Shown one piece after another: positions 6,001 through 59,295 of a stretch of 64,000 nucleotides of DNA (position 1 is the stretch's first letter; each line of letters opens with the position of its first letter). The stretch covers positions 1 to 64,000 of the forward strand of contig QPMI01000657.1 of NCBI GenBank assembly GCA_004431415.1. Direction: 5' to 3'. This DNA is from Cyanophora paradoxa CCMP329 (Eukaryota > Plantae > Glaucophyta). The notes under the pieces were generated by a model that was given only the letters and a program-made list of their open reading frames with translations, ran no database searches and had not been told where the DNA came from. Made by a program: the position numbers and the translations under genes.

Positions 6001-8544
6001 CGTCCTCCAGTAGCGCGCGCAGCATGTACAGAGGCTCGTCGGTGGACTTGCCTCGAGTAAAGGCGAAGTTCGCGCCCTGTAATATGTCGTGTTGCGGAGA
6101 ACGCGCGAGAGGCGGTCAGTGAGGACTGCCGTCACGAGTTTCAGCGTGCATTCTTGGAGTGTAATGGGGCGGACATTGTCAGGGTGCCATCCCATTCCCC
6201 GCCCTTGGGATAAGACATATATTTCCGTGAAGAAGGGCGCAGGGACAGACGAGAGTTTTAGGATCAGATTTACCGTAGTGAGGATTACCTGGCGGCACGT
6301 CGGGAACAGGTTATCGGGTTCTTGGAGCGGCTCCGGTCCAGGCCCGCCTTGCGTAGTTCTTCGCAAGTTTTCTTTGAAAGGACCGGTGCCGTCCACAGCA
6401 TTTTTATCATTTCGTGGGAAAATCCCGAGGGCCCCGCCGCACCGTTTCGGAGAGAGCCGATGATTCGGTCCAGTTCGGCCTCGCTGGTGGGTTCCATTAG
6501 GTACACATAAATTGCATCATCAATATCCTGGCGCGGGGAGTGAAGTCGGCGCCATATTGAGGCCTCCTGTGCACATGTACTAAGTGGCAGCGCGCCCGGG
6601 TCCCTGTTCGCTGTGAGTGGGCTACGCTGCCGTGTCCAGGCATGCATGTGATGGCGTGCGAACTGTTTCACTGCATCTTCATTGCCGTATACCTGATATT
6701 CTCCAGCGTGGCAGAGGGAGAAGGAGGTAATCGGCCTGCGTTCTGGGGCTTCAAGTGTTTGGCGGAGGTATTGGGCGAGGTCTGTCTTGAACATGCGCTG
6801 CGAGCGCTCTCGGTTTGCTCTGATTGTCGTGGCTTCGAACGTTTAATGTGGGCCTGGACTTTGGTGTCCAAGGCCGAGGCCCAAGTGGTGAAGCTTGGAA
6901 AATAGTCGAGCCAGCTTGGTTGTCGGGCAGAGAATGGCGGCGGCACAGGGGGTAGTGGGAGTTTAAGATAGCCTGACCGCTTGTCTATTGGGAGTTTGTC
7001 AAGCCGGCGGTTGTGATTTGAGATTGCCCTGCGCAGGTCAGAGAGGGAGTGCCGTACGCGGCGCGGCGTGGAGTCGATCCCGTGGCGCGCCGCTTCCCAT
7101 GCCTTGCGCAGTTCCTGGGCCCTCGTGAGCAGGTTGGATTCGGGCGGCCGCGGCGGGAGAATTTTTGAGGGATTTTTGGGGGCGTAAAGATGCAAATACT
7201 GGCGATTGGCCGAGGTCACAGATGTGGGCGAGAGTGGATTTGAGGGCTTCGTGCAGGCGGGCTAGGCGGTCCTCTGGCGGGGTGCCGTCGTCGTCCTCCA
7301 GCGTTGCGAGTAGCTCTCGTACGCTAGCTGAGGACCCCGGCACCGGCTGCTGTAGCTTTTCTTCCAGTAGTTCTTTGAAGCGAATTTTTGTGAGCGATGC
7401 CTGTGTCGCGTACTTGAAACGCGGGGGGCCGGGCGAAGACGCTGGGGGCCCCAGTTTATATTTGATGGCCAGGGCCCGTTTACTGTACTCTGCAAGGAGT
7501 GGGAAATGGTCCGAGGGGAAAGGGGCGTTTCTAGGCGACGCTTGGGCCGCTCGAAGGGCGTTAGTCGCGACTTGGGATTGTAAGATGTAGTCGAGCCTGG
7601 TAGCATGGCGGAGCGTGCCATCTGGGGCGATGCCTCGAGGGTTGGGGTTGTCAGGAGCGTCAGGAAATATGAAGGTGATTTGGTCGTCGGTGCCCATGGC
7701 TGTGGCAGCGTCGGAGAGGGTCCAGTCGTGAAGCAGTTCATGCCACCAGCGGTGATCAGGTTCTCGTGTGGTCGCATATTGCCCCTGTCTGATTTTGCCC
7801 GTCTCGGGACAGAGGCAGCTGTTAAGAATCGCCAAGGAGGAAAAAGTGCGCGCGGGGGCGGAGCGCCCAGTCAGCGTACATGGTCGCGCGGAGATAGTCG
7901 AAGATTTTCGCACTTTCAGTAGACCGCGCCGTCCGACTTTCGCCGGGGGGAGGTACACGCTGGCGATAAAGATCTGAACATTATTTGCAAATCGAAGCTC
8001 ACAGCCGGCCACGCGGCCTGGCATTGTGTAGGTCTTAAAACAGTGCTTGGCCATATTTTCTGAGAGAAAAAGGGTTACGCCGGAGCCGCGGGGGAGGCTC
8101 GATTTTGGCGGAGTTTCTTCTGCGAGAGGGGCGGGGTGGGCGGGGCTCGAGCTGGGAGCTCCTGAGCACTAGTTGTGCGCGTGGCCGAGTCGGCGTGCAC
8201 GGACGTGAGCATGAGCCCCGATGTCACTGACCTGCGCATCGCTCTGACCGTAGCCTGGGTGCAGTTAAGTGATTGGACCCCTAATACGCTCAGCCCCCAG
8301 TCAAGCATATATTTCTGGATCTGGCCGACATGGTTGACGCTAGAGCAGGTGCGGGCGTTCCAGGTCGCGAGTCTCCAGTACTGGTCAGAGTCAAAGCGGC
8401 GGCGTATGATACCCGATTTTCGGTGAGTGCCCGCAGGTTTGGCTCCGAGGCGCTCGTGTGTAAACAGCTCGAGGGGAAATAGCGTGCGGAGCAGCGGCGC
8501 GGGACGGCCGCACCAGCGGGGCCAGGCGTGTTATATGCGGTCAT
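1..8544 (-). CDS. LINE copy A ORF2 polyprotein (frameshifted in this assembly)
   Basis: APE: LATWNAR, IASVYLP, TRLDYIL, SDHFP (~8400-7450). RT: RPITLQE, LLDIRRAYDSV, LPQGG..SP, AYADDT (~6500-5355). RNase H: ATDAS, NNNKGE, TDS, VKVKAH, NARADRLA (~3770-2760). CCHC: CVRAGC..ETHDHAFGLC. C48: GHW, YDG, QNDRFNCGIF (~980-420). Start codon uncertain. Confidence 0.88.
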
Positions 8545-9569
8545 GGGACTCTGGGCGGGTGGAACATTTTCTTGTGCCCCTGGTGCAGGCCAGACTCCAG
8601 GCCTGGGTTCTTCGCGGCGGTGCGCGGGGGGCGGGCCGGATAGCGCTGTCGTTGGATGCCATGATGCCGGGCTCGCGCGTGATGCATGGGCCAGCATGGC
8701 CGGGTCAGCTTGGCCCGCCGCGGCGAGGGCCGAGCCCGCTGCCGCTGCCTGGCGGCGCCACCCCGCATTCGCATGTGAGCCTCTAGCGCTGTGGTCATGG
8801 CAGCTATCGGGCCCGATTGACTGGTTGCTCCCGATTGGCGGGTGCACAATGAATGGCGACGACGACGTAGTGCCGGCGCTAGCGGCCGTCCGGGAGGCAG
8901 AAAAAATTCTTTTTCTGTTCATGCATATGTCTTGGGGCCGGGGACTCGGACGGTTCGCCGGAGCCAGTGATCGAGCTCGCGGTAGGCGTCGCGGAGATTC
9001 GAATTCGGGTCGGGATCCAGCTGCAGCGCCGGCCGCGGCGTGCACCGCCGTGCAGTCTACAGTGCAGACCGTACACGTGCGGGCCACTGACAGTGAGGCT
9101 ACGTATGCTATGCTGGCGGTAGCGCCGGCGGCGCACATACACAGTGTCATACTGGTACTAGTAATTGTAGTGGCGGTGGCGCTAGCTGTTGTGATTGCCT
9201 TGGCGTACCCATCTTTGGCAGCCCTAGCTCTAGATCGGGATCTGGGGCCTGCTAGGTCGTGATCGGGGGGGCTGTTACTACTCAAGTTAAAGGTGGCGCC
9301 GGCGCCGGTGCGCGTGCCGGCGCCAGCTGTTTCGGTATCATATGCATTAGTGCTAGTGCAAGGCATTATAACTACTCGGAGCCGCGTATACGTATACGTA
9401 CGTGCCGACGGCGCCGTCAGGTCGAGGCCGGCATCGGCACCGGTACCGGCGTCGGCGTCGGTCCTCTGGCATCTTTGATCATGACAGGCTAGCCGGCGCC
9501 GGCGCCGTAGTACTAGTAGCTTCTGAGGTACAGGTCTGTAGCGGGGCCGGCTTCGGCACCGGCCTCGGG

Positions 9570-9878
9570 CTCCTGGCTTCGCTTAGGGACTAGCTGTCGT
9601 GTTACGTATACAGCAGGATCCGCGGCCTGCTGGGGCCGAGTCCGGGAGGCAGCGGTCGGTGTCGTAAGAACAGGCTGGCGCTTCAGGCCGGTGGTGCAGT
9701 CATGATTAGACTGTTCTCCTAGCGTGGCTGTCGAGCGTGCGCGAGCCCGGGCTAGCCGGATCCGCACAGTTGATGGGTACGTTTTCCACCCACGTACCCC
9801 TCTGGGCCTCGCGTGCAAGTCGTGATCGGGTCTAGATCTACAGGGCCAGGTGCGCGTCCGGCGCGTATGAGTACGGGT
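9570..9878 (-). repeat. ~300-bp structured segment upstream of ORF2; also at 18964-19266 and 55505-55813
   Basis: Direct match with few differences. Hairpins GGGTACGT/ACGTACCC, CAGCAGG/CCTGCTG and CAGTC/GACTG. Confidence 0.9.
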
Positions 9879-9977
9879 GTTCTCCTTTGGGTCCCCCACT
9901 GGTACCACCGCTCTGCACCTGTTTAGCTCTAGCTCGAGATCTGGATGTTGTGACTTCGGCGTCGAGGTGTCCGTACA

Positions 9978-10043
9978 TGACGGGACTAGAGCTAGCGCTA
10001 TTACTGGTTCTGACGGGACTAGAGCTAGCGCTATTACTGGTTC
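9978..10043. repeat. 33-bp tandem duplication in the LINE inter-ORF spacer
   Basis: TGACGGGACTAGAGCTAGCGCTATTACTGGTTC x2; also present in copy B at ~55913-55978. Confidence 0.9.
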
Positions 10044-10125
10044 AGGATCTAGGCCGGAGGGGCTTGGCTGCCTTACTCTTAGCTTGCTGTGGCTCGCGGC
10101 GGTTGGCGCTGGAGTTGCAGCTAGC

Positions 10126-13100
10126 TCAGTACTGCCAGGGCAGCCGCTGCTGTCCAGGGCCGCCGCCACCCCGGCCGGCGCCAGCCCCAAAGCCGCGGCC
10201 ACCACGTGCTCCTCGTCCACCCCTGCCGCCGGCGCCACGGCCTGGGAGTCCGCGCCCACCGCGGGGGGGGCCCATCCCGCCCCGGGCTCTCCCAGCAAAG
10301 CCGCCCCGGGGGAGGTCGCCCCAGATGATGTCCACCCCACGGCCACCGCGGCCATTGGCTGCGCCCGCCCCGCCGCGGGCATCCAGATGCCGGCTCCGCC
10401 GCGGGCTCCATGGGCTCCGCCAGCCCCGCCGCGGCCTCCAGCGCCGCCTGCACCGCCCCAGTCGCCTCCGGCCCTCCAAGTCCGCCACGGCCGCCCGCAG
10501 CCCCGCCGGGCCCCCGCCACGCGCTCCGCGGTAGGCAGCGTCCACATACAGTCCACCGCGCCCTCCGCCCGACCCCCAGGTGCTTGCCCTCCTGCAGCTG
10601 CCGGCTCGTCCCGGTTCCGCCGGTCGAGGGGCTGGCAGTTGTGTCCCCCCCCGAGCTCGCCACGGTAGTTGAGCAGGGGCTGGTTGATGTTGTTGACGCT
10701 GGTGAGGAAGTGTGCCGCGCACATGAGGGCTTCGGACTGGGGGAGGGGGATGACCACGTGCTGCCGGTAAGGATAATTATGTGAGATGGGGGGGGGGCCT
10801 CGGGCGGAGGGGAGGTGGGGGGTACCACATCGTGGGTGACCTCGAGAATGATGACCTGTCCCCCCCGCGCGTCGTGGAGGTCGAGGGCTCGGAGAGGGTT
10901 GGGTGCGCCGTGAAGCCCATGCGCTCGCGCCTCGCCGCCCACTGTTCGTCATCTAGATCCAGCACACGGAGCTGGCGGCCACCACCGGTGGAGTAACGCT
11001 CGCGTCAACCATCGAGGCTTGGACACCCACCTCGATCTGCGGGAGGGAGGGGTAAGCGCAAGTAGGGGGGGCTTTGCATGGGTAGGGCGGACAGAGGTGG
11101 GTACGGTCGGGTTGTCATGTACAGGACGCCGGCGGCCCGCAGGTCCATGATGAACTGCCGGTCCGGCACAAGCTGTGTGATGTCCAGCTGGCATTCGTTG
11201 CCGGGGAAGGGGACATGCTCCTGGTTGGCGTCGGCGTGCCCACAGCCGGCGTGGGCCCCGGCAAAGATGAGGACTCCGTTGAGGACATGCTTGCGGTCGT
11301 TGTTCCAGCAGAAGTCCGGGTCCGGGTCTTGGAAGCGGGGAGGTGATGAGGGCTGAGTTGTTGTCTGCGGCCAGGAGGTAGCCAACGTTTGCCTGCCAAG
11401 GGAGGGAGGGGAGAGTCAGAAGGGGGGTAAGGTGGTAAGAGCAGGTGGCAGGTCGGACCAGGAAGTTCTGCGCGGCCTGTGCGTGCGACGCCGGGATCAG
11501 GTAGCGGCTGTCGGCCGTTCGGGCACTTGACTGCCAGCTCGTTGTAGGCCACGACGACATCGTTGGCCTCGTACGCGTCGGGGTTGATGCCAGACGTGAG
11601 GGCGCGGAGCACTGTGTTCTTCATGAAGCTCGAGAGTGTCCCCCTCTCCATCTTGCGGCACCCTAGCTCGGCTTCGATCGCAAAGAACTCGGTGCTGGAC
11701 GCGGGGGCGTCAACGTGGATGCCGACTGAGAGCGGCCCTGTTGCGCCAAGCACGGCGAGCGTCGCGAGTTGCGGCGTGACCGGTGTAAGGAGCTGGGCTG
11801 CGCGCCGAGCCTCCGTGATGTTGGCATACTTGATTGCGATGCACGGGCTGGACTCCTCGATCCGGTCGCCGCAGACCACGTGGCCGCAGCGGAGGTCACA
11901 GCGTCGTCGGCGGTGCTGGATTCTGGCAGCGGCGGGAGGGGGTTGCGGAGTGCTGAGGGGTCGGCACCCTCGCCGATGCGGTGGTCCGGATGCGGGCCCG
12001 GTCGGCTTGGTGTGCGGCGGCGATGCGGCCCCGGATCTCATTGACCACCGCTCGGATCTGGAGGCCTTCCCGTCGGCATGTGGACCGTGCAGAGGCCAGG
12101 ATCTCGTCGCGGGTGTCTTGCGGGGCGTCTGGGGGGACGAGTCGCGAGGCCAGGCCGTCGCCGAAGAGGACCAGATAGACCTTTGCAGTGTTAGGTCCGG
12201 TCCCGTTGGCTGCTGCTGCCGGCCTGCCGCCGCCACCGCCTCCGCCGTACACGTTGCCGTCGCCTCCGGCCGGGCTTGCCCATCGTTGTCGCCGCCGTCC
12301 TCCCGTCCCAGTTGAGACGGCGTCCAGCACCGCCGGCCCAGTTTCCGCCGTCCCGTCCGCCTGGCCCGCCAGGCCCGTCGTTCCCGTCGCGTTGACCACC
12401 GTTGCGCGCAATGCGCTCGTCGTGCCGATCGCCGGCGCCGCGGGCCTGGCCGCCGTGTCCATCCCGTCCGCCGTGCCCGTTGCGGCCGCCGTGCTGGCCG
12501 GCGCGTTCACGTGCACCACCTACATGTACCCCCCCTGCGTCAGCGCTCTGGGCGCAGCCGTGCATGGGGCGGTGTGGGGCCTACCCTGGCCACCCCAGCA
12601 TCGTCATCGGCGCCCTGTGCTCCGCCATGCTGGCCATCTCCATGCTGTACCCCCCACCTCCAGCGCCACGGTCAGCATGCGCCTCTTCGATATCTCGGCC
12701 GTCTGCAGGGGCACCCACATGGTCGGCCCTCAGGCATTGGGCCCCAGCTTGCCAGGGCTCAGTGCGGTACTCACCGCGTTCTCGTGCATCCCCCATGTCG
12801 GCGTCACCCTCGGCGTCCCCTGCGTGGTGATCTTCGCCCTCGCCATCTGCGTGGGTGCCCGCCGCATTGGTGATCTGGGTGTCCCCCCCGCAGTATTCGG
12901 GGCAGTGCTCACGCTGGCCCATGCCGCCGTGTTCATCGTTGCGGTGTACCCCCCCCTCTCCAGCTCCACGGTCAGCGTCATCGTCTCGGTCGTCATCTCC
13001 TACGATAGTGCCCTCATGGTCAGTCCTTCTGATTGGAGGACGGTCGCTAGCACGGGGGCAGGGGCGGTGCGGACTCTCGTTCTCGTCGTCGGCGTCATTA

Positions 13101-18536: not shown

Positions 18537-18835
18537 CCGGCACGCCTTGGTGGCGGTCGGAAGCGTAGGCGGGCTGTTTGCGCCCCTCGTTGTCCCGGGC
18601 GATCGTCAGCGTCAGTAGCGCGGCCGCGGTACGGGTTGCTGCGGTCGAGCGGGGGAGGGGAAGCCAGCGGGTTGCAAGCGCGTAGCTACCCGAGTTTGAG
18701 CGTGTCTGGCTGAGGTCTCCAGCGGTGTGAGCATTCGGGCAGGCTGACAGAATCTCGGCTGACGCTGAAAGCTCGAGGTTTCCTAGGAGCTGTCTACAGC
18801 GGACCGGGTCCGCATTCAGATAAGCGTGCAGGCAC

Positions 18836-18930: not shown

Positions 18931-18963
18931 CTCGGCCGAGGATGGACGCGGCGTAAGGCCGGC

Positions 18964-19266
18964 CTCCTGGCTTCGCTTAGAGACTAGCTTTCGTGTTACA
19001 GCAGGATCCGCGGCCTGCTGGGGCCGGGTCCGGGAGGCAGCGGTCGGTGTCGTAAGAGCAGGCTGGCGCTTCAGGCCGGTGGTGCAGTCATGATTAGACT
19101 GTTCTCCTAGCGTGGCTGTCGAGCGTGCGCGAGCCCGGGCTAGCCGGATCCGCACATTTGATGGGTACGTTTTCCACCCACGTACCCCTCTGGGCCTCGC
19201 GTGCAAGTCGTGATCGGGTCTAGATCTACAGGGCCAGGTGCGCGTCCGGCGCGTATGAGTACGGGT
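18964..19266 (-). repeat. Second copy of the ~300-bp LINE segment; candidate 5' leader of copy A
   Basis: Matches 9570-9878 in the same orientation, and the match ends sharply at 19266. Confidence 0.85.
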
Positions 19267-44438: not shown

Positions 44439-45206
44439 GCCCCGCTTGGCGCTATTCCGGGCCGCAAGCTACCGACTCGCCATCGACGCCTGCTGCTGCA
44501 GCTGTGCCGCGAGAAGAGCCGGCTTATCCGTCGAGCTGCAGTGGCACGCGTACGCTTGAGGCGGGACTGGTGTTGCTCGCTGTGCCTTCAGAGCCTGAGG
44601 CGTGCCTTCATAACCTGCTGCATGCGCAGTCGTGCATTGCTTGCAGGCTCCGAGAGCTTGGCGGCCTGCAAGCTGCAGGCTGCTCTGCGGCAGGCTGCTG
44701 CTGCTGCTGCCGCATGATCACTTTTGGAGCCTGATCTAGGCGAGCGCAATCTAGCCCGCTTCTTGGCCAATCTAGCTCGTTTCTCAGTCAATCTTGGGTA
44801 CTACGGTAGGTCCGGCGCCGCCGGATCGCCGGCCGGCGGGCTGACGGTCCATGCGCCCGTGAATCGGGTCGCTAATCCAAGGCTGATTTTTTTTTTTTGA
44901 GTTTTCCGTAGTTTATTAGGGGACAGAGCCCCTGGTACACAAAAAACATCGTTTTCTGTCTACCCTAGGCCTAGGTCTACCCTAGGCCAACTAATATACT
45001 TTAGCCTAGTCTACTCCCCACTATTGGGTCTCCGACTAGGCGCCCCAAGGGCTATACCCTATTGCGAGCCCCGCCCCCTCTACCCTTGAGGCGGCTCTCT
45101 CGGAGCCTCCCCCCCGCGACGGGCCAGGGCCGGTCACGATGGGGTGGGGTAGAGAGGTGGCAGGGGGCTGGGGCCGGGGAGATTGTTGGGCTGGCAGGCT
45201 CAGGGT

Positions 45207-48200
45207 TTAAAGCCAAGCGGCGAGATCCCAAAGATGAGAAGAGAGAGGAGGAGATCTCCGCGGTGGTACCTCACGTGTTCCCGTGCAGGACAGAGGAGCG
45301 GGCGTGGAAGGCGGTGGAGGTGGCGGTGTCGGTGGAGCGACAGGGAACAGATGGGACAGGTTGCTGGAGGGGCGAGATGGGGAGGGTGGAGCTGGAGAGC
45401 CCGTTTCGAGAAGAGGAAGGGTGGAGGAGGGGAGGGTGCGGGGGAGGAGGCTGGGGTGAGGGCCGGGCCTCTTCGGTGGGGAGGGCGGGGCGGCGGCCGG
45501 TCTTGTGGGGAGGCCGGTCTTGAGGTTCGGGAAGAGGCTCGGGCACAGCTGATGCGGCTGCGGACGACGCTCCATCCCGCCGCTGGGCGTGACCATGAGC
45601 AGCAGCAGGGGTGACGGAAGCTGCTGCAGCTGTTCTAGATCTGCGGGGGCGAGGTCCGGGTCCGGAATTATTGCCTCGGGCTGCACGGAATCCCGCCGAC
45701 TCTTGAATTTCTCGAAGGAGGCGCGGGCGTCGCGTCCGCACTGTTGCCGTGCCGTCGGCTTGTGCCACTGGTGTGTCAGGCGGGGGCACTTGCGTTGGCG
45801 GACTGTCCTTTGGACTCTGGGGCCTAGCTATAGAGGTGTCGCTGACGGCCGACGGGCGCGGGCGGGGTTGGAAGAAGGTGCGGATGTCTGCTCGCGAGTT
45901 CCGGGCCGCAGGCCTTGGGGTAGGCTGCGCGCTCAGCGGGGGCCGGTATTGGGGTTCCGGTGCGGGCGTGACTATTTTGGGCCTGGATGGGCCTGCAATG
46001 GCTTCATCTTGGGGGCGCGGTCTGTCTCGCTGGTTTTGGGGGGCGACACTGGAGCGGTACATTTTCCTTTGCGTTTGTGCTGCGCCAGGGCTTCGGGGGA
46101 GGCAGCAGCGTAACCGCACCGGCAGCTGAGGGGGCATCCCGTGGCAGTTCTCCCGGGGCCAGCGCAGCCACCGGTATTGCCCGGGGCTGCTCGGGCTGGG
46201 AGGCGGTGCTCGTGGGCGCCTCCGTATCCAAGGCCTGCGAGCCTAGAATCCGAGAAAGAATGAGGCCGCGCCAGGTGGCGCAGTTAGACACAGTGCCGTG
46301 AAGGAGGGTGTGTAGGCCGTGGGGTCATGTTCCAGAGCACGGACAAGTATTTCGGCGAAGGCACAGACGAAAATCCCGCAGTTGAAGCGATCGTTTTGGG
46401 CCGGGATGGGGAATCGGGTGGCTGAGGGGAGGGGCCAGGTGAGAGCGTCGTCGGCGCCGGTCGAGGAGCCTAGGGCTGCGCATTCGCGCTCCATGTTGAG
46501 CCATTTTAGGAGGGGCAGGAGTTGACGGCGGGCCTCTTCGGGGCCCGGGAGATTGTATCCATCGTATAGTTCAGCACGGCGAGCACGGAGATGGAGGGCT
46601 GCAAGGATCCAGTGGCCCGGGGTGTGGATAGGGAAGAGTAATAGGTCATAGTCAAAGACATTAATTCCGCGCCCAGCGGTGCGACGGCGCAGGCGGGCGC
46701 TGCCCGCCGGCGTTATTGTCTGGGGAATAGCGGCGTAGAAAGTGTGCGGGAAAAGTAAGACGCGTCGGCGAGGGTTAATTTCTCCGCTCGCAAGAAGGTT
46801 TAGTCGGGCAAGGTAGTAGTTGATGACGTCGGCGTTCACCAGGACGAGCCGTTCAGCGTGGCTAGGTCATGGAGCGATACGGAGGCACTGCCAAACAGTG
46901 CAGCGGGGCCGCTGCGGGCTGCCGGGAGCTCTCGGACTGCGCTGTTGGGTAGAGCGCGGGTAGGGGAGCGGCGTACTTGGGCCCAGGCGGCACGTAATGC
47001 AGGTGGGGACGGCGGAGCCGGCCACCCTGCATTACTGGCATTAATATTGGTGATGCTGTTAGCAGCTGCCGGCCTAGCTACAGGTCTAGGTCTCGGGCTC
47101 GAGCTCGGGGCGGCGGTAGGGGGCACCGGCGTTGCGGGTATCGCTGTTGTAGGGGGGGCCGTGGCCGGCCACGGTGCTGGGGGAGCAGCGCGGGTTCGAG
47201 AGCGGCGCGACTGGCTGACTAATTGTAGGTCTGATGAGAGGGTGAGCTGGCCGTTGGGTATCCGTCGACGCGGGGCCGGGGCCACCACGGTCGAGGGGCT
47301 CGTGGGCTCATCCCTAATCCTGGCTGGCATCGACCTCGCCGGTGAGGGCTCAGCAGGGCGCGAGGGTCGAGGTGCATGAGTTTGGCGGCGAGTAATCCCG
47401 TGTCGGCGTTGCCAGGACTGGACTTCGCTATTGCGAGCCTTCCAGATTGCTTGGGTGTAGTCTATGATGGTGGCCATAATTGCGTTGGCGCATTTAAGCG
47501 CCGCCGGTCTACGTACATCTAAGTAAATCAGGGCAGGGATGAGGCTACGAGGAAGGAGGAGCCTGACGGTGTGGCGGGGAGAATCGCAGGCAAGGTCGGC
47601 GAAGAGTTTGCTGCCGAGGCTTTGCCACTGATCGGGCAGGCCATAGAGTGGCTGCGTGAGGTGCGAAGGAAGGGGCCCGGCCGTTGGCGCTGACGCTCTG
47701 ACCATCCCAGTTTGCATCGTCAGCCAGTGCAAAGGCCGGGAACAGTTGGCGCAGCAACAGTCCGTCCTGGCGCAGGGCCGGGGGCAGCTTGTAGGCTGGG
47801 TCGCCAGCTGCAGCCGCATCGACTGCAGTTTTTAGGCGTTGAGACGATATGGTTTCGTACAATAGGTTGAATATCTTAGTTTGGGCTTCGATACGGAGGG
47901 TGCGTGTTGCTGGGCAGAGACCAAAGGCGTGGTCGTGGGTTTCAGGCGTCCCGCTAACGATAGGGGGGGCCGCGGTGCCTGGCGTGCGTCTCGTGCGGCC
48001 GGGTCGCCGTTGGGGCCGTTCCGGATCCCACCGTCTTCCTCGGGGTCGGACGCAGGCGGCTGCCATGGCGGGGCTGGGGTGGGCCGGCCGTCTGGGCCTA
48101 GCACGGACGCGCAGCCTGCGCGAACACAGAGTCCATTTGGATTTATTGCACTATAGAGATGGGGAGCGTCCCGGGCACGTTCACCCATGAGGGTGCGAGT

Positions 48201-51200
48201 CCGGAGCTGAATTTCGTGATTTGAGCAAGCCTCGCATTCAGGGGGTGCGATGCATCGCGGGAGAGCCCTTTCTTGCGGTATTCGCGGGCGAGGCGCGCAC
48301 GGTCGACCGGACTGCCCAAATGGCATTTTTCGGTTGCAAGGAGACGGGAGAAGTTCCGAAATTCGCACGTATTTTTTACGTGTGCTCGCGGGTCAGACTC
48401 AACTCTGTAAACTCTACGAGTGTCGTAGTTCTCGTTCCAGCAGCGCGGGGGCGAAAAGAGTAGGACCATGTCAAATCCGCCAGGGGGAAAGACCGGCTCC
48501 CGGCGGGCGTGCCACGCGCGTTTTGATGCAACTGTTGCGGCCGGGGACGGGTCTTCGGGGTCAGATTGCCAGGCTGCTTCCTCAGGGTCAGCCCAGGAAG
48601 AAAGTTCCCGGCCGTCGAGTGCCTGCCGGGAGAGGTCTGCGCTGGGGTGCAGAGCCAGTGCCGCAGCGGCGAGGCGGTCGGCTCGTGCGTTGTCCCGATC
48701 AAATGCACGGTTTGGAACCCGTTCTTCTTCCACCAGCAGGGGCAGGCTTGGTAGTCCTGGTGTATGCTGACCTAGCGCAGCCCGGGCTTCGCGCCGCCTC
48801 TGTCGTTCTGCTCGCCTGGAGGCACGAGACGCTTGCTGCATTTGGTGGACGGCTCGGCGGGCGTTCCGACGGTGGATGTGGGCAGTGCCCGCGCGAAGGT
48901 GCTCGGAGATATAGTTGTAGGCGCCGGTTAGCGGGTTCGCGCGCCCTTCGTATACTCCGTGCCGGGGCCATATTGAGCTATCAGTTCCGCCTCCGTAGGT
49001 TCGGGAGCGACCGGGTCTCGGTCAGAGAGGTAGGATTCGTATGAGTCTGCGTCTGATTCCGAGTCGTGGTCGGCCACTTCAGCGGGGGCGGCAGCCGGGC
49101 GCGGGCGGCGCCGAGTTATATATTCTTTCTGGTGGGCTTTGACTTTGACAAGACGTTCTTCGTATAGCATTCTGTCGGGTGCCACGGCCCTTGCTAGTGC
49201 AAGCCGGATGCACTGCACCTCAGCATACGCTTTAAGGTGATGGGAGTACGAGGCTCGAATGCAGCTGCGAAGGGTGGCGGTGGCGCGATGCGAGACGTAC
49301 TTGGAATAGTCCGCCATTGCAGTGAAGCTGTCAGTTTTCACTGTGCAGCCTTCGGGAGAGAGCAGCAGGGCGGACAGGACGGCGAGGAGCTCGCCTTTGT
49401 TATTGTTCACTGTGCCAGGACACGGGGCCACGAAAAAGTCGCTGCCGTCGGTCGGGATGGCGTCTGCAAGGCCGCGAAGTTTCGCCACCTGGTCAGTATC
49501 GACGCCGGTTGTGCCCAGCCGGTCAGCTAGTGCGTGAATTTGTTGACGGAGGGCTATCCCTCGCTGCGTGCGGGCAGCTTCGTCAGCTAGTGAGGCCGGG
49601 TTGCTCTCACGGGGCCAGACGCCAGCGTAGGCCGTGAGTGCAGCTTCTGAGGCGGCGTCCATGGTACTGGCATCCGTGGCTGCGAGTCGGCGCTCGCGGT
49701 CGAGCGGGAGGGAGGTGCGGCCGAGCTCCGCGGCAATCAGGTTCCAAAATGGGTCAGCATACTCTGACGATGGGATGCAGAAGTCGCTCAACTGTCGGCG
49801 TTGGGGGTAGGCCCGAGGCGCTGTCGGCGGGGGGACGGTCCCAGGGTCGCGAGCGGCGACTCCATCTGGCCGCTGGGGCGCCTCGTGATCATCTGGATCA
49901 TAATTCCAGTCCTGTTCCCACGGGGGAGGAAATGAGTGTCGCGGAACTCGGCCACCACGTTATTTTATCTTCAAGGAAAATGCGAGCATGCTCGGCGACA
50001 CGGCCTGACCGCGACTCGGGGACCAGGCTCTGAAGTCGGGCGGGGTAGATGTAGGCTGTGTCTTCGGTCCAGCGGCACCGTTGGGAGGCCGGGTCTGAGT
50101 GGTCACATGCGCGGCGGAGAGCCTCTGCTTCCGGCGTTTTCGCTGTGAAGCGGCTGTCGCATTCTTTGGGATCCATTATGCAGCGGAAGAAGGAGACGGG
50201 TTCGCCGGTGGTGTCATATATGTGGTCCTCTCGGTCGTCCTGGCCTTTGTCTCGGCGGACCCAGTGTTCGAGCTCAACTAGGACGCGTTCTCTGCCGTCG
50301 TCAGCGTCAGTTGTCCGCCGGATATTGCAGATGCGTCCTAGATACGCTTCCGTTGTCCAAACGAAGCCGCCGACTTTGTACTGGGGCGAGAGCAGGCCGG
50401 CTTCAAGAAGGGTACGTTGGGCTGCAGCCGGATTTTGCGCAGGCTGCAGGTGCATGGGGAAGCGGAGACGACGGGGGATGGCGCGCGGGCCGACGGGCTG
50501 ACATATTGCTCGGGTGAACGACGGGAACCAGGATGGAGGTCTATTGAGTCGCTGTTTAATTTTCCCGCTGCCCCATAAGCTAATCCAGTCGAGCACACTG
50601 ACGCCGTCGGGCCCCGTGACGTCAGCAGCTGTGAGGATATCGTGGCGCCAAAGGAATGGTGCAGCCTCACGCAGGAGGCGCGGGGGGAGCAGTGTTGTGA
50701 GCACAAAGCGGCGTTCGAGCTGCGGGTGAGGCAGGGCCGGAACGAGATAGTCCTTGCCTGAGTCGAGTTTGTAGCCGGCGCGGGTCAGATTTCGCGCTAC
50801 AGCTAGTGCAAAATTGTCTCTGTAGGCTGCGGGGCCCAGCTGTAAATTGGGGTAGCAGTATGGCGGAAGGGGAAGCCCCAGTTGCTCCTGCGCTGCGAAA
50901 ATGCGGTGCATGATATACGGGAGAAGCAGGGGGTGGTTCGTGCGGATGGTTTCATCGAGCACGTGAATGGCAGCTGTTCGTCCTCCGTTCTCTTGAGGCC
51001 GTAGAAGCCTCGGCTCCACATGAGCGCGTTGGGCGTGGACCCCTAAGGCGGGCATGATGTTTAGTGAGCGTCATCCAGAGAGTGTCGAGCTGGGCACATT
51101 GTCTCTCGGTAAAGGAAACAATCTTGCAGGCGTAAGTGATGCGAGGGAGAAGGACGCTATTTACTATGTATATCGTCTCTTTGGCGGTGAGTTTCTTACG

Positions 51201-54200
51201 CCTTAGTATCGCGCAGGCTGCCCGAGCTGTTGAGTATACAGCCTCAAATTGCCGCCGCCAGTCCAGATTTGCTGTCATCCAGACCCGAGCACCTTGAATG
51301 GTTTGTTCGGCGCAAGGACTTTGTCGGCCGGTTCTTTAGCATCGGGCGGGCCTAGTAGCGGGGCAGACGGGCGTGGGGAGACGTTGTTGTACGTAAATTC
51401 GGTTTTCTTCGCGTTGAGGGCAATATCATGTATCCAGAAGAATTCAGAGGCCAGGTCTGCGTGCAGCTGGATGCCCCGGGCTGTACCGCTAATAAGTACG
51501 GTGTCGTCTGCGTATGCTTGCCCCGGCGAGGTCACCCGAGGCAGGCGCGCTCGCAGGCGTCGGGTGGGCGCGGGCAGGTTAGCGTCAGACGCAGAGGGCG
51601 GCGGGCCCATGGAGTATTGGGTGCTCTCCGCAGCGCTGACTTCGCGTAAAGCCGATAGAAATACGTCATAGAAGATGAGCCAGTGAATTGGGGACTCGGT
51701 TCCTCCTTGCGGGAGCCCGCACTCCACATCGAAGGGGTCAGTTGGGCCGTACCCTGTCGCGACGGACGCTGTACGTGATGTTGATATTTGTCCGTAGAGG
51801 CTTATGTACCGTTCGGGAATTTTTAGGCGGCGGAGTGCCATTTCCATGCTAGACCAGCTGACGCTGTCGTAGGCTCTGCGAATATCTAGCAGTAGCAGAT
51901 AGATCGGTTTCGAGAATTGTTTTGCGTCCTCCAGTAGCGCGCGCAGCATGTACAGAGGCTCGTCGGTGGACTTGCCTCGAGTAAAGGCGAAGTTCGCGCC
52001 CTGTAATATGTCGTGTTTGCGGAGAACGCGCGAGAGGCGGTCAGTGAGGACTGCCGTCACGAGTTTCAGCGTGCATTCTTGGAGTGTAATGGGGCGGACA
52101 TTGTCAGGGTGCCCATCCCATTCCCCGCCCTTGGGGATAAGACATATATTTCCGTGAAGAAGGGGCGCAGGGACAGACGAGAGTTTTAGGATCAGATTTA
52201 CCGTAGTGAGGATTACCTGGCGGCACGTCGGGAACAGGTTATCGGGTTCTTGGAGCGGCTCCGGGTCCAGGCCCGCCTTGCGTAGTTCTTCGCAAGTTTT
52301 CTTTGAAAGGACCGGTGCCGTCCACAGCATTTTTATCATTTCGTGGGAAAATCCCGAGGGCCCCGCCGCACCGTTTCGGAGAGAGCCGATGATTCGGTCC
52401 AGTTCGGCCTCGCTGGTGGGTTCCATTAGGTACACATAAATTGCATCATCAATATCCTGGCGCGGGGAGTGAAGTCGGCGCCATATTGAGGCCTCCTGTG
52501 CACATGTACTAAGTGGCAGCGCGCCCGGGTCCCTGTTCGCTGTGAGTGGGCTACGCTGCCGTGTCCAGGCATGCATGTGATGGCGTGCGAACTGTTTCAC
52601 TGCATCTTCATTGCCGTATACCTGATATTCTCCAGCGTGGCAGAGGGAGAAGGAGGTAATCGGCCTGCGTTCTGGGGCTTCAAGTGTTTGGCGGAGGTAT
52701 TGGGCGAGGTCTGTCTTGAACATGCGCTGCGAGCGCTCTCGGTTTGCTCTGATTGTCGTGGCTTCGAAACGTTTAATGTGGGCCTGGACTTTGGTGTCCA
52801 AGGCCGAGGCCCAAGTGGTGAAGCTTGGAAAATAGTCGAGCCAGCTTGGTTGTCGGGCAGAGAATGGCGGCGGCACAGGGGGTAGTGGGAGTTTAAGATA
52901 GCCTGACCGCTTGTCTATTGGGAGTTTGTCAAGCCGGCGGTTGTGATTTGAGATTGCCCTGCGCAGGTCAGAGAGGGAGTGCCGTACGCGGCGCGGCGTG
53001 GAGTCGATCCCGTGGCGCGCCGCTTCCCATGCCTTGCGCAGTTCCTGGGCCCTCGTGAGCAGGTTGGATTCGGGGCGGCCGCGGCGGAGAATTTTTGAGG
53101 GATTTTTGGGGGCGTAAAGATGCCAAATACTGGCGATTGGCCGAGGTCACAGATGTGGGCGAGAGTGGATTTGAGGGCTTCGTGCAGGCGGGCTAGGCGG
53201 TCCTCTGGCGGGGTGCCGTCGTCGTCCTCCAGCGTTGCGAGTAGCTCTCGTACGCTAGCTGAGGACCCCGGCACCGGCTGCTGTAGCTTTTCTTCCAGTA
53301 GTTCTTTGAAGCGAATTTTTGTGAGCGATGCCTGTGTCGCGTACTTGAAACGCGGGGGGCCGGGCGAAGACGCTGGGGGCCCCAGTTTATATTTGATGGC
53401 CAGGGCCCGTTTACTGTACTCTGCAAGGAGTGGGAAATGGTCCGAGGGGAAAGGGGCGTTTCTAGGCGACGCTTGGGCCGCTCGAAGGGCGTTAGTCGCG
53501 ACTTGGGATTGTAAGATGTAGTCGAGCCTGGTAGCATGGCGGAGCGTGCCATCTGGGGCGATGCCTCGAGGGTTGGGGTTGTCAGGAGCGTCAGGAAATA
53601 TGAAGGTGATTTGGTCGTCGGTGCCCATGGCTGTGGCAGCGTCGGAGAGGGTCCAGTCGTGAAGCAGTTCATGCCACCAGCGGTGATCAGGTTCTCGTGT
53701 GGTCGCATATTGCCCCTGTCTGATTTTGCCCGTCTCGGGACAGAGGCAGCTGTTAAGATCGCCAAGGAGGAAAAAGTGCGCGCGGGGGCGGAGCGCCCAG
53801 TCAGCGTACATGGTCGCGCGGAGATAGTCGAAGATTTTCGCACTTTCAGTAGACCGCGCCGTCCGACTTTCGCCGGGGGGGAGGTACACGCTGGCGATAA
53901 AGATCTGAACATTATTTGCAAATCGAAGCTCACAGCCGGCCACGCGGCCTGGCATTGTGTAGGTCTTAAAACAGTGCTTGGCCATATTTTCTGAGAGAAA
54001 AAGGGCTACGCCGGAGCCGCGGGGGGAGGCTCGATTTTGGCGGAGTTTCTTCTGCGAGAGGGGCGGGGTGGGCGGGGCTCGAGCTGGGAGCTCCTGAGCA
54101 CTAGTTGTGCGCGTGGCCGAGTCGGCGTGCACGGACGTGAGCATGAGCCCGATGTCACTGACCTGCGCATCGCTCTGACCGTAGCCTGGGTGCAGTTAAG

Positions 54201-54476
54201 TGATTGGACCCCTAATACGCTCAGCCCCCAGTCAAGCATATATTTCTGGATCTGGCCGACATGGTTGACGCTAGAGCAGGTGCGGGCGTTCCAGGTCGCG
54301 AGTCTCCAGTACTGGTCAGAGTCAAAGCGGCGGCGTATGATACCCGATTTTCGGTGAGTGCCCGCAGGTTTGGCTCCGAGGCGCTCGTGTGTAAACAGCT
54401 CGAGGGGAAATAGCGTGCGGAGCAGCGGCGCGGGACGGCCGGCACCAGCGGGGCCAGGCGTGTTATATGCGGTCAT
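45207..54476 (-). CDS. LINE copy B ORF2 polyprotein APE-RT-RNase H-CCHC-Ulp1/C48 protease (~3000 aa, frameshifted)
   Basis: APE 54360-53380 (WNAR, VYLP, GDLN, RLDYIL, SDH). RT in ORF 51275-52876 (AYADDT). RNase H ~49690-48660. C48 in ORF 46243-46839 with H/D/Q/C in one frame. Confidence 0.9.
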
Positions 54477-56060
54477 GGGACTCTGGGCGGGTGGAACATT
54501 TTCTTGTGCCCCTGGTGCAGGCCAGACTCCAGGCCTGGGTTCTTCGCGGCGGTGCGCGGGGGGCGGGCCGGATAGCGCTGTCGTTGGATGCCATGATGCC
54601 GGGCTCGCGCGTGATGCATGGGCCAGCATGGCCGGGTCAGCTTGGCCCGCCGCGGCGAGGGCCGAGCCCGCTGCCGCTGCCTGGCGGCGCCACCCCGCAT
54701 TCGCATGTGAGCCTCTAGCGCTGTGGTCATGGCAGCTATCGGGCCCGATTGACTGGTTGCTCCCGATTGGCGGGTGCACAATGAATGGCGACGACGACGT
54801 AGTGCCGGCGCTAGCGGCCGGTCCGGGAGGGCAGAAAAAATTCTTTTTCTGTTCATGCATATGTCTTGGGGCCGGGGACTCGGACGGTTCGCCGGAGCCA
54901 GTGATCGAGCTCGCGGTAGGCGTCGCGGAGATTCGAATTCGGGTCGGGATCCAGCTGCAGCGCCGGCCGCGGCGTGCACCGCCGTGCAGTCTACAGTGCA
55001 GACCGTACACGTGCGGGCCACTGACAGTGAGGCTACGTATGCTATGCTGGCGGTAGCGCCGGCGGCGCACATACACAGTGTCATACTGGTACTAGTAATT
55101 GTAGTGGCGGTGGCGCTAGCTGTTGTGATTGCCTTGGCGTACCCATCTTTGGCAGCCCTAGCTCTAGATCGGGATCTGGGGCCTGCTAGGTCGTGATCGG
55201 GGGGGCTGTTACTACTCAAGTTAAAGGTGGCGCCGGCGCCGGTGCGCGTGCCGGCGCCAGCTGTGTCGGTATCATATGCATTAGTGCTAGTGCAAGGCAT
55301 TATAACTACTCGGAGCCGCGTATACGTATACGTACGTGCCGACGGCGCCGTCAGGTCGAGGCCGGCATCGGCACCGGTACCGGCGTCGGCGTCGGTCCTC
55401 TGGCATCTTTGATCATGACAGGCTAGCCGGCGCCGGCGCCGTAGTACTAGTAGCTTCTGAGGTACAGGTCTGTAGCGGGGGCCGGCTTCGGCACCGGCCT
55501 CGGGCTCCTGGCTTCGCTTAGGGACTAGCTGTCGTGTTACGTATACAGCAGGATCCGCGGCCTGCTGGGGCCGAGTCCGGGAGGCAGCGGTCGGTGTCGT
55601 AAGAACAGGCTGGCGCTTCAGGCCGGTGGTGCAGTCATGATTAGACTGTTCTCCTAGCGTGGCTGTCGAGCGTGCGCGAGCCCGGGCTAGCCGGATCCGC
55701 ACAGTTGATGGGTACGTTTTCCACCCACGTACCCCTCTGGGCCTCGCGTGCAAGTCGTGATCGGGTCTAGATCTACAGGGCCAGGTGCACGTCCGGCGCG
55801 TATGAGTACGGGTGTTCTCCTTTGGGTCCCCCACTGGTACCACCGCTCTGCACCTGTTTAGCTCTAGCTCGAGATCTGGATGTTGTGACTTCGGCGTCGA
55901 GGTGTCCGTACATGACGGGACTAGAGCTAGCGCTATTACTGGTTCTGACGGGACTAGAGCTAGCGCTATTACTGGTTCAGGATCTAGGCCGGAGGGGCTT
56001 GGCTGCCTTACTCTTAGCTTGCTGTGGCTCGCGGCGGTTGGCGCTGGAGTTGCAGCTAGC

Positions 56061-58435
56061 TCAGTACTGCCAGGGCAGCCGCTGCTGTCCAGGGCCGCCG
56101 CCACCCCGGCCGGCGCCAGCCCCAAAGCCGCGGCCACCACGTGCTCCTCGTCCACCCCTGCCGCCGGCGCCACGGCCTGGGAGTCCGCGCCCACCGCGGG
56201 GGGGGCCCATCCCGCCCCGGGCTCTCCCAGCAAAGCCGCCCGGGGGAGGTCGCCCAGATGATGTCCACCCACGGCCACCGCGGCCATTGGCTGCGCCCGC
56301 CCCGCCGCGGGCATCCAGATGCCGGCTCCGCCGCGGGCTCCATGGGCTCCGCCAGCCCGCCGCGGCCTCCAGCGCCGCCTGCACCGCCCCAGTCGCCTCC
56401 GGGCCCTCCAAGTCCGCCACGGCCGCCCGCAGCCCCGCCGGGGCCCCCGCCACGCGCTCCGCGGTAGGCAGCGTCCACATACAGTCCACCGCGCCCCTCC
56501 GCCCGACCCCCAGGTGCTTGCCCTCCTGCAGCTGCCGGCTCGTCCCGGTTCCGCCGGTCGAGGGGCTGGCAGTTGTGTCCCCCCCCGAGCTCGCCACGGT
56601 AGTTGAGCAGGGGCTGGTTGATGTTGTTGACGCTGGTGAGGAAGTGTGCCGCGCACATGAGGGCTTCGGACTGGGGGAGGGGGATGACCACGTGCTGCCG
56701 GTAAGGATAATTATGTGAGATGGGGGGGGGGCCTCGGGCGGAGGGGAGGTGGGGGGTACCACATCGTGGGTGACCTCGAGAATGATGACCTGTCTCCCCC
56801 GCGCGTCGTGGAGGTCGAGGGCTCCGGAGAGGGTTGGGTGCGCCGTGAAGCCCATGCGCTCGCGCCTCGCCGCCCACTGTTCGTCATCTAGATCCAGCAC
56901 ACGGAGCTGGCGGCCACCACCGGTGGAGTAACGCTCGGCGTCAACCATCGAGGCTTGGACACCCACCTCGATCTGCGGGAGGGAGGGGTAAGCGCAAGTA
57001 GGGGGGGCTTTGCATGGGTAGGGGCGGACAGAGGTGGGGTACGGTCGGGTTGTCATGTACAGGACGCCGGCGGCCCGCAGGTCCATGATGAACTGCCGGT
57101 CCGGCACAAGCTGTGTGATGTCCAGCTGGCATTCGTTGCCGGGGAAGGGGACATGCTCCTGGTTGGCGTCGGCGTGCCCACAGCCGGCGTGGGCCCCGGC
57201 AAAGATGAGGACTCCGTTGAGGACATGCTTGCGGTCGTTGTTCCAGCAGAAGTCCGGGTCCGGGTCTTGGAAGCGGGGGAGGGTGATGAGGGCTGAGTTG
57301 TTGTCTGCGGCCAGGAGGTAGCCAACGTTTGCCTGCCAAGGGAGGGAGGGGAGAGTCAGAAGGGGGGTAAGGTGGTAAGAGCAGGTGGCAGGTCGGACCA
57401 GGAAGTTCTGCGCGGCCTGTGCGTGCGACGCCGGGATCAGGTAGCGGGCTGTCGGGCCGTTCGGGCACTTGACTGCCAGCTCGTTGTAGGCCACGACGAC
57501 ATCGTTGGCCTCGTACGCGTCGGGGTTGATGCCAGACGTGAGGGCGCGGAGCACTGTGTTCTTCATGAAGCTCGAGAGTGTCCCCCTCTCCATCTTGCGG
57601 CACCCTAGCTCGGCTTCGATCGCAAAGAACTCGGTGCTGGACGCGGGGGCGTCAACGTGGATGCCGACTGAGAGCGGCCCTGTTGCGCCAAGCACGGCGA
57701 GCGTCGCGAGTTGCGGCGTGACCGGTGTAAGGAGCTGGGCTGCGCGCCGAGCCTCCGTGATGTTGGCATACTTGATTGCGATGCACGGGCTGGACTCCTC
57801 GATCCGGTCGCCGCAGACCACGTGGCCGCAGCGGAGGGTCACAGCGTCGTCGGCGGTGCTGGATTCTGGCAGCGGCGGGAGGGGGTTGCGGAGTGCTGAG
57901 GGGTCGGCACCCTCGCCGATGCGGTGGTCCCGGATGCGGGCCCGGTCGGCTTGGTGTGCGGCGGCGATGCGGCCCCGGATCTCATTGACCACCGCTCGGA
58001 TCTGGAGGCCTTCCCGTCGGCATGTGGACCGTGCAGAGGCCAGGATCTCGTCGCGGGTGTCTTGCGGGGCGTCTGGGGGGACGAGTCGCGAGGCCAGGCC
58101 GTCGCCGAAGAGGACCAGATAGACCTTTGCAGTGTTAGGTCCGGTCCCGTTGGCTGCTGCTGCCGGCCTGCCGCCGCCACCGCCTCCGCCGTACACGTTG
58201 CCGTCGCCTCCGGCCGGGGCTTGCCCATCGTTGTCGCCGCCGTCCTCCCCGTCCCAGTTGAGACGGCGTCCAGCACCGCCGGCCCAGTTTCCGCCGTCCC
58301 GTCCGCCTGGCCCGCCAGGCCCGTCGTTCCCGTCGCGTTGACCACCGTTGCGCGCAATGCGCTCGTCGTGCCGATCGCCGGCGCCGCGGGCCTGGCCGCC
58401 GTGTCCATCCCGTCCGCCGTGCCCGTTGCGGCCGC
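56061..58435 (-). CDS. LINE copy B ORF1, 3' part, with introns
   Basis: Introns at 56695-56759, ~56973-57042 and 57333-57398; RGG tail ending QRLPWQY*. Confidence 0.65.
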
Positions 58436-58521: not shown

Positions 58522-59265
58522 CCGGGGGTACGGGGGCGGCCGGTGGCGTACCCCTTTCTGAGGCTTAAGGGGTACGCCCCTATCCCTGCCGCCCCAAATG
58601 GCGCGCCTGTCGCCTGCGCTTCGCCTGCAAGCAGGTCAACCGAGCTGAGTTGGGCGGGGGTACGGGGGCGGCCGGCGGCGTACCCCTTGCTGAGGCGTAG
58701 GCGGGAACTCCCTGTCCCCGCCCCGCCGAACAGCGCGCCCGTCGCCTGCGCCTTGCCTGCGAGCAGGGCAACCGGCCTGAGCTTGGACGGGGGTACGGGG
58801 GCGGCCGGTGGCGTACCCCTTTCTGAGGCTTACGCGGGTACGCCACTAGTGCTCTCCCCGCCCGCTGAATGGTGAATTCGAACCTGTTGCCTGCACCTCG
58901 CCTGCGAGCAGGTCAACCGGCCTGAGCTTGGGCGGGGGTGCAGGGGCGGCCGGTGGCATACCCCTTGCTGAGGCATAGGCGGGTACGCCCCTCTCCCCGC
59001 CCCGCGGAATTGTGCGCCCGTCGCCTGCGCCTTGCCTGCGAGCAGGGCAACCGCGCTGAGCTTGGGCGGGGGTGCAGGGGCGGCCGGTGGCGTACCTCTT
59101 TCTGAGGCTTACGCGGGTACGCCCCTATCCCCGCCGCCCCAAATGGCGCGCCTGTCGCCTGCGCTTCGCCTGCAAGCAGGGCAACCGAGCTGAGCTTGGG
59201 CGGGGATGCGGGGGCGGCCGGTGGCGTACCCCTTGCTGAGGCGTAGGCGGGAACGCCGCTCTCCC
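58522..59265. repeat. Diverged ~135-bp tandem repeat (~5.5 units) with alternating A/B units and internal dyads
   Basis: Unit starts near 58526, 58657, 58790, 58935, 59068 and 59202. Units alternate TTTCTGAGGCTTA and TTGCTGAGGCRTAGG. Confidence 0.85.
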
Positions 59266-59295
59266 CGGATCATCGGATGGTCGTCCGACACTGAC

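Follow-up and report, generated by a model that had tools for sequence, protein, structure and literature searches.

Proteases that remove ubiquitin-like modifiers have been picked up by many classes of transposon. Among the retrotransposons without long terminal repeats (non-LTR elements), the nematode elements NeSL and Utopia-1_TSP combine an N-terminal Ulp1 protease with a C-terminal restriction-like endonuclease, or RLE (PMC4640811), and the cryptophyte element Dualen-1_GCr has a single open reading frame (ORF) of 5,287 residues in the order SET, C48 protease, apurinic-like endonuclease (APE), reverse transcriptase (RT), RNase H, CCHC, RLE (PMC5029228). Green-algal Dualen/RandI elements have a Josephin-like protease (PMC8557442). 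Josephin and the OTU domain of a Symbiodinium ORF2 protein (ORF2p) are both reported as N-terminal fusions on ORF2p, and the role proposed for them is interference with host protein modification (PMC8557442, PMC13405545). C48 proteases are also found in DNA transposons, specifically in Crypton (PMC3212892) and Ginger (PMC2836005). Here we describe a long interspersed nuclear element (LINE) of the glaucophyte alga Cyanophora paradoxa, whose ORF2 carries a C48 domain far downstream of the RT. It was found in a stretch of 64,000 nucleotides from strain CCMP329 (assembly GCA_004431415.1, contig QPMI01000657.1, positions 1 to 64,000 of the forward strand), which we refer to as the window.

The proteases on non-LTR elements in the literature searched are N-terminal only (PMC4640811, PMC5029228, PMC13405545), and the searchable literature, with Repbase outside it, returned no APE element in which a C48 follows RT, RNase H and CCHC. 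This agrees with the remark of a first-pass annotation of the window, made from the letters alone, that a C-terminal C48 on an APE-RT-RNase H element is not recognised as a standard architecture. Glaucophyte transposons have hardly been described so far: for C. paradoxa, LINEs are reported as 2.47% of the genome and repeats are given as RepeatModeler totals only, and the GC content of the window, 58-88%, is consistent with the genome value of 67.6% (PMC6704402). The element is present in two copies, both on the minus strand, as are all of its features given below. Copy B (44887..58435, 13,549 bases) is apparently full length, and copy A (1..12489) has its 3' part lost beyond the window start.

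The C48 domain and its closest relatives

In copy B the domain extends from 46877 to 46244, almost exactly the interval noted in the first-pass annotation, and the series of C48 motifs read there on the minus strand is matched far beyond chance. It starts with SLHDLATLNGSSW (46877-46839), continues through IHTPGHW (46629-46609), ELYDG (46572-46558) and QNDRFNCGIFVC (46398-46363), and closes with the last helix, WRGLILSRIL (46273-46244). The stop-free piece 46246-46866 matches Pfam PF02902 with E = 1.1e-12 and 48.6 bits against a cut-off of 20.7, over profile positions 4-190 of 217. In a phmmer search of PDB the domain matches SENP1 (E = 2.7e-11), and its His (IHTPGHW), Asp (ELYDG) and Gln/Cys (QNDRFNCG) motifs align with their SENP1 counterparts; the His-Asp-Cys triad and the oxyanion Gln read in the first pass are thus all in place. 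When the domain is aligned with its 39 best matches (40 sequences in all), the columns of H75, W76, Q147 and C153 do not vary at all and that of D92 hardly does; all of these residues are present here. The first of the two tunnel Trp, which clamp the Gly-Gly tail (SSW/VNAD), lies in the preceding window frame and is joined to the rest by a read-supported letter at 46838.

The AlphaFold2 model of the domain, computed from the 40-sequence alignment, has a pLDDT of 83.6 and a pTM of 0.83. Its top Foldseek matches are SENP1 and SENP2 (E = 1.6e-9, TM-score 0.73-0.75), followed in order by SENP3/5, Ulp1, SENP7, XopD/NopD and the NEDD8 protease NEDP1 (E = 1.5e-4). As judged from the alignments and the model, the domain is a catalytically complete Ulp1/SENP-type C48 protease, with the His-Asp-Cys triad, the Gln and the tunnel Trp.

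The domain is less easily read in the assembled sequence. In copy B it is spread over three window frames, with breaks at 46838 and 46295. In copy A (340..978) it shares one ORF with the zinc-finger region, and the frame is lost before the Gln/Cys motif, where a letter is missing at copy A position 525. The Pfam match of copy A is correspondingly short (E = 2e-6, profile positions 2-129 only), and SENP1 aligns with residues 424-556 of its 636-residue piece, which adds the N-terminal helix (SENP1 residues 12-135). The first-pass annotation had described an intact domain in both copies: it is present in both, and as assembled it is intact in neither, with the domain of copy B restored by short reads. 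Likewise the ORF at 337..2163 of copy A, described as joining zinc finger and protease, does so for the N-terminal two thirds of the domain and not for the Gln/Cys part.

An exhaustive HMMER search with the C48 domain against 1.84 billion representatives gave 1,276 matches; none of the best 150 exceeds 1,079 residues in length or 41% identity to it. Ten of the matches were scanned against Pfam and are ordinary SENP/Ulp1-type proteins, none of the ten having an RT. The nearest relatives in this search thus include no LINE-C48 fusion, and more distant fusions are possible. Outside the LINE gene models of Cyanophora the closest C48 domains are cellular SENPs, at no more than 40% identity, and a scan of the Joint Genome Institute (JGI) metagenomes with C48 returned no relative. 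Within Cyanophora, the C48 part used as sole query retrieved the gene model P0183 at E = 7e-22. A word-indexed protein search with the 636-residue piece of copy A gave no match, probably because its word list was swamped by the Pro-rich linker.

We also observed another retroelement with C48 cargo, in an unrelated sample (Logan contig SRR30758780_5360): there a 38% identical C48 protein, P0013, which is among the nearest C48 relatives, has an ORF of its own immediately after pol (protease, RT, RNase H, integrase) in an element of the Gypsy type with long terminal repeats (LTR), at positions 5534-6799 of the locus L001.

Reading frame and organisation of the element

To read the element through its frame breaks, contigs of four independent short-read runs were aligned to 46000-51999. 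In all four the contigs carry one extra G or C at 14 shared places, there is no other indel in this interval, and the sole substitution common to all runs is at 50534. Twelve of the places are listed (46010, 46129, 46295, 46838, 47671, 47705, 47962, 48190, 48956, 49921, 49949 and 50970). Each of them is a frame switch between successive open pieces, always in the direction of a lost letter, and 10 of the 12 letters are present in copy A and missing from copy B. The frame breaks are single G/C omissions of the assembly. The comparison of the two copies gives the same picture: blastn aligns them at 99.25% identity across 12.5 kb (copy B side 45907-58435) with 6 mismatches and 88 gap openings, and over both blastn and MAFFT alignments there are 6-17 mismatches and 86-88 single-letter gaps, with 63 letters missing in copy A and 23 in copy B (MAFFT), nearly all of them G or C. 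Because the differences are mostly single-letter gaps in G/C with few mismatches, they point to an error-prone long-read assembly and not to decay. Note that a single G or C is lost about every 400 bases: since the omitted letters are restored by all four runs, the frames of the window cannot be read at face value, and any ORF called from this assembly must be doubted.

Letters carried by the contigs of the runs were added for frame bookkeeping only. With the 12 listed letters a single open frame of 1,927 codons runs from 51042 to 45274, spanning the RNase H-like region, the CCHC finger, the Pro-rich linker and C48. Adding the C that copy A has at 51039 extends it to 2,025 codons, from 51335 to 45274. 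The hand-over from the RT piece (53146-51278) to this frame requires one more letter between 51335 and 51278. A contig of run X1 (record 7) over 51270-51512 has exactly one gap, its position unlisted, and a contig of run X3 over 50685-51550 has three gaps, covering two insertions that were counted but not listed. We take the fusion as shown, C48 being in the same frame as the RT in the real genome, with the RT join itself as its presumptive step. If this join holds, the ORF counts at least 2,600 codons between 53146, where the RT piece starts, and the stop, and possibly more upstream; the switches into the APE piece (54147) and from APE to RT (53085) coincide with letters that are present in copy A and absent from copy B. 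With the short-read letters added, C48 is thus placed where the first-pass annotation had it, inside the LINE unit and in frame downstream of APE, RT, RNase H-like region and CCHC.

The order that we propose for ORF2 is APE, RT, a conserved middle segment, RNase H-like region, CCHC finger, Pro-rich linker, C48, Cys/His motif and a low-complexity tail. Upstream of it a protein-like frame with an RGG-rich end (56100..58100, as translated from the assembly) has no Pfam match and is possibly ORF1 with an RNA-binding tail. The APE (53436..54147) matches Pfam Exo_endo_phos at E = 8.2e-6, with 26.2 bits against a cut-off of 24.5, and its piece has no match in PDB. The RT core (51283..52138) matches RVT_1 at E = 2.6e-21 and has YADD at 51503-51514. 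Between RT and RNase H lies an open segment of the repaired frame of about 340 residues (49950..50970), conserved and without a Pfam family match. The RNase H-like region (48668..49680) reads ATDAS, NNNKGELLAV, VKTDS and KVKAH, followed after about 146 residues by DNARADRLA, so that the D, E, D and H motifs can be made out with the last Asp set apart; its piece has no PDB match, and its Pfam RNase_H match (E = 0.016) is sub-threshold, reaching 15.8 bits where the cut-off is 25.8. Among the profiles named in the first-pass annotation, Peptidase_C48, RVT_1 and Exo_endo_phos are therefore above their cut-offs and RNase_H is below. The RNase H-like region is interrupted (48695-49131) by the stretch from KVKAH to DNARADRLA, an insert that is partly conserved in P0183.

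The CCHC finger is of the LINE type (47914..48128: CVRAGC, a loop of about 55 residues, ETHDHAFGLCP) and matches no Pfam family. It is followed by a helical-looking segment and then by a linker of about 150 residues (46878..47300), which is rich in Pro, Arg and Ala, in keeping with the Pro/Arg linker noted in the first pass between zinc finger and C48. That ORF2 ends in C48, as the annotation had it, does not hold: the frame stays open for about 320 codons beyond the domain. Here lies a Cys/His motif, CRCGYAAASPEALAQHKRKGKC (46059..46124), in a frame set by the read-supported letters 46129 and 46010; it is of the type CxC...H...C, for which Pfam gives only a C2H2 hint at E = 0.1. The Pro-rich tail behind it (45274..46058, stop at 45271-45273) lacks the lowered second-position GC of the folded domains, so that it is open without being established as coding. 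Below 46000 the tail frame is that of the assembly alone, and a shift of one would move its end to 45203; the C-terminal residues of the frame ending there, RGDLLLSLLIFGISPLGFKP, match the C-terminus of P0183. The tail also contains RADIRTFF (45871-45894), in agreement with the loose pattern for PCNA binding, [KR]xx[ILM]xx[FY][FY], possibly as a chance match in a tail of such length.

P0183 represents a sister family with the same order of middle segment, RNase H-like region, CCHC finger, linker and C48. Its domains are 43-58% identical to those described here (43% for the middle segment); C48 is 42% identical, with about 63% in the His-Asp core, and the linker 29%. The ETHDHAFGLC of the CCHC finger is conserved in it. 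For the RT, the nine best relatives all come from the EukProt gene models of C. paradoxa, with identities of 37-56%, and on this evidence the nearest relatives of the element are C. paradoxa LINEs.

The element is a young, high-identity family of an APE-type LINE. It has the hallmarks of this type: an APE upstream of a YADD-bearing RT, a poly(A) 3' end and candidate 5'-truncated copies. The 5' boundary is sharp, with the same start base in both copies and unrelated flanks upstream. By direct reading of the sequence, the 3' untranslated region of copy B (44887..45270) has AATAAA at 44912-44917 and ends in A12 at 44887-44898, so that the poly(A)-tailed unit described in the first pass around C48 stands for copy B, while the 3' end of copy A is outside the window. 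Short-read contigs exit the element at 46936 (in three runs) and at 46220, and these exits look like 5'-truncated copies.

The surroundings of the two copies hold several further repeats. An isolated fragment at 18931-19266 is 96% identical to the 5' region of the element (55501-55813); it lies on the far side of a GC-rich satellite (14629-18549, unit of about 140 bases, up to 88% GC) located 2-6 kb outside copy A on its 5' side. The 5' end of copy B borders immediately on a 134/279-base satellite (58523-59267), which by blastn is not similar to what lies beyond copy A, the satellites by the two 5' ends being unrelated. A perfect tandem array with a 16-base unit occupies 32386-33073. A second, unrelated APE-RT LINE occupies 21257-25681 on the minus strand, in a stretch of 48-56% GC (Exo_endo_phos E = 2.5e-6, RVT_1 E = 2.7e-17). 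Its RT is 24% identical to that of the C48 element, and its ORF 3' of the RT (21257-23590) matches no Pfam family at E = 0.001.

What the protease may do

SUMO (small ubiquitin-like modifier) is central to transposon silencing in animals and fungi. The best explanation of the observations as a whole, and one that we consider fairly probable, is that of an APE-type LINE whose ORF2 carries a SENP1/2-like C48 protease acting on host SUMO targets. As a translated part of ORF2p, the protease would ride with the element's own RNA-protein particle into the nucleus, where it would act as an isopeptidase for SUMO, or for another ubiquitin-like modifier, on host proteins near the particle. Silencing or repair factors that depend on SUMO, at the place where transcription or integration occurs, would be the likeliest targets, and the element's own polyprotein would probably not be cut. 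Two observations in the literature fit such a setting: the R1/R2 LINEs of Drosophila are reported to be repressed via the SUMO pathway (PMC7676866), and young transposable elements are methylated in Cyanophora (PMC12344493).

The signs of constraint come from several directions. The GC content of C48 at the three codon positions is 0.66/0.49/0.66, and the same pattern is seen in the RT, middle and RNase H segments, unlike the linker, where GC is highest at the second position (0.78), and unlike the tail. In the P0183 family, about 50% diverged in other domains, C48 is kept at the same place. In the RNase H-like region, variant contigs of run X1 from a sub-family (49189-49558) show 12 differences, 8 of which are synonymous and 8 at third positions (P = 0.019); this synonymous excess between sub-families would be a sign of purifying selection.

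Three other explanations have to be weighed against these data. The C48 domain could be a processing protease that cuts a giant ORF2 polyprotein, or an ORF1-ORF2 fusion, in the manner of the CE-clan proteases of adenovirus, poxvirus and African swine fever virus, which cut at sites of the Gly-Gly type. Polyprotein processing is indeed known from viral proteases of the CE clan, the length of the ORF, at least 2,600 codons if the RT join holds, is unusual, a PPGG motif between the RNase H-like region and the CCHC finger is conserved in both families, and the poxvirus protease I7L is among the fold matches. However, I7L appears there at rank 49 with E = 2.5e-3 and a TM-score of 0.45, and C48 is far nearer to SENP1/2 and Ulp1. 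Moreover, enzymes of the SENP type recognise a folded ubiquitin-like domain, and Pfam finds none in the ORF pieces, which weakens the idea somewhat; to our knowledge, the LINE ORF2 proteins studied so far act uncleaved. With the domain nearer to the SUMO-specific enzymes and no ubiquitin-like domain in the ORF, self-processing becomes unlikely. A different view is that C48 is a functionless passenger, a captured piece of a host Ulp1 gene that has not yet decayed. Transposons, for instance Mutator-like elements, often capture fragments of host Ulp1, and because the copies in the window are nearly identical, the intactness of the domain within the family says little. Also, about 90% of sampled words of the element were found in 20 sequencing runs from 15 studies, and none of these runs is on record as RNA. 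But the best cellular relatives are no more than 40% identical, so the capture must be old, and yet all catalytic and tunnel residues have been retained. P0183 keeps the domain in place with the His-Asp core well preserved while the linker has drifted, and the codon-position pattern of C48 is that of the constrained domains. We therefore regard an idle passenger as quite improbable.

The third explanation is that the fusion is not real, with a host Ulp1 gene lying beside a LINE or two sequences misjoined. The assembly is error-prone, as the single-letter gaps between the copies demonstrate, and C48 nevertheless stands at the same place in both copies. The CCHC region and C48 are covered together by single contigs of independent runs (for example X1 record 1, 46083-48449; X3 record 9, 46000-47961), P0183 has the same order in a different assembly, and the poly(A) signal comes 1.3 kb past C48. 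Since the contigs span the junctions, we give an artefact practically no weight.

Several points nonetheless count against a SUMO protease working for the LINE. Its SUMO specificity is predicted from the similarity to SENP1/2, and four runs that are probably RNA contained none of the sampled words. To join the RT to the 2,025-codon frame, one inserted letter is needed, which was counted and whose position is unlisted. No target-site duplication was found: the flanks behind A12 and at the 5' end share no word of 10 or more bases except GC-rich chance matches, a test that shorter duplications escape. Within the family the C48 region shows no variant contigs from which a ratio of non-synonymous to synonymous substitution rates (dN/dS) could be taken. 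Finally, the Gln/Cys part is unreadable in the P0183 gene model, so that the catalytic conservation across families concerns His and Asp only.

A bolder version of the SUMO-protease reading can also be formulated. Glaucophyte LINEs may have recruited a SUMO protease of the host as a counter-defence module borne by ORF2p, which would act in cis at the element's own chromatin or integration site, would strip SUMO from silencing or repair factors, possibly including PCNA (the PIP-like RADIRTFF is adjacent), and would be kept by selection in several LINE families. We offer this only tentatively and hold it to be doubtful as it stands. If true, a retrotransposon would here encode an antagonist of the SUMO branch of genome defence. 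The family described here is a clean test object, with young-looking copies, a complete SENP-like domain in a new position on a LINE, and a diverged sister family for selection tests.

Comparison with known elements

Like the NeSL and Utopia elements, the Cyanophora LINE is a non-LTR element whose ORF includes an Ulp1-like C48 cysteine protease. In those target-specific elements, however, the N-terminal Ulp1 domain is upstream of the RT, a restriction-like endonuclease is C-terminal and there is no APE, whereas here an N-terminal APE and an RNase H-like region are present and C48 lies far past the RT. The likeness to Dualen-1_GCr is closer in composition, both being giant algal LINE ORFs with C48, APE, RT, RNase H and CCHC. 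In Dualen-1_GCr, C48 precedes the APE and an RLE closes the ORF; here C48 stands in the place of the RLE, and Pfam detects neither an RLE nor a SET domain in the ORF pieces. The part after the CCHC finger has no match to the R2 proteins of PDB even at E up to 10, a sequence search that a degenerate RLE could escape. An RT followed by RNase H and CCHC is also the arrangement in the I group and in Dualen. In one comparison with solved structures the RT is somewhat closer to R2 enzymes (E = 3e-11) than to L1 ORF2p (E = 4e-7), from which no clade placement follows.

The LINEs with Josephin or OTU domains share the fusion of ORF2 to a cysteine protease that removes ubiquitin-type modifiers, but their proteases belong to other clans and are reported as N-terminal, while the one here belongs to CE/C48. 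C48 has likewise been captured by Crypton, Ginger and the Gypsy-type element at L001; Crypton and Ginger, however, are DNA transposons and L001 is an LTR element, and in CryptonS and L001 the protease is a separate ORF and not part of the RT polyprotein. The cellular enzymes SENP1, SENP2 and Ulp1 have the same fold, His-Asp-Cys triad, Gln and Trp tunnel. They are stand-alone proteins with N-terminal targeting regions, whereas this domain is part of a retrotransposon ORF. A LINE that carries a protease for ubiquitin-like modifiers is thus a known theme; as far as we have checked, the position of the protease, the combination of clan and architecture, and the host lineage are new.

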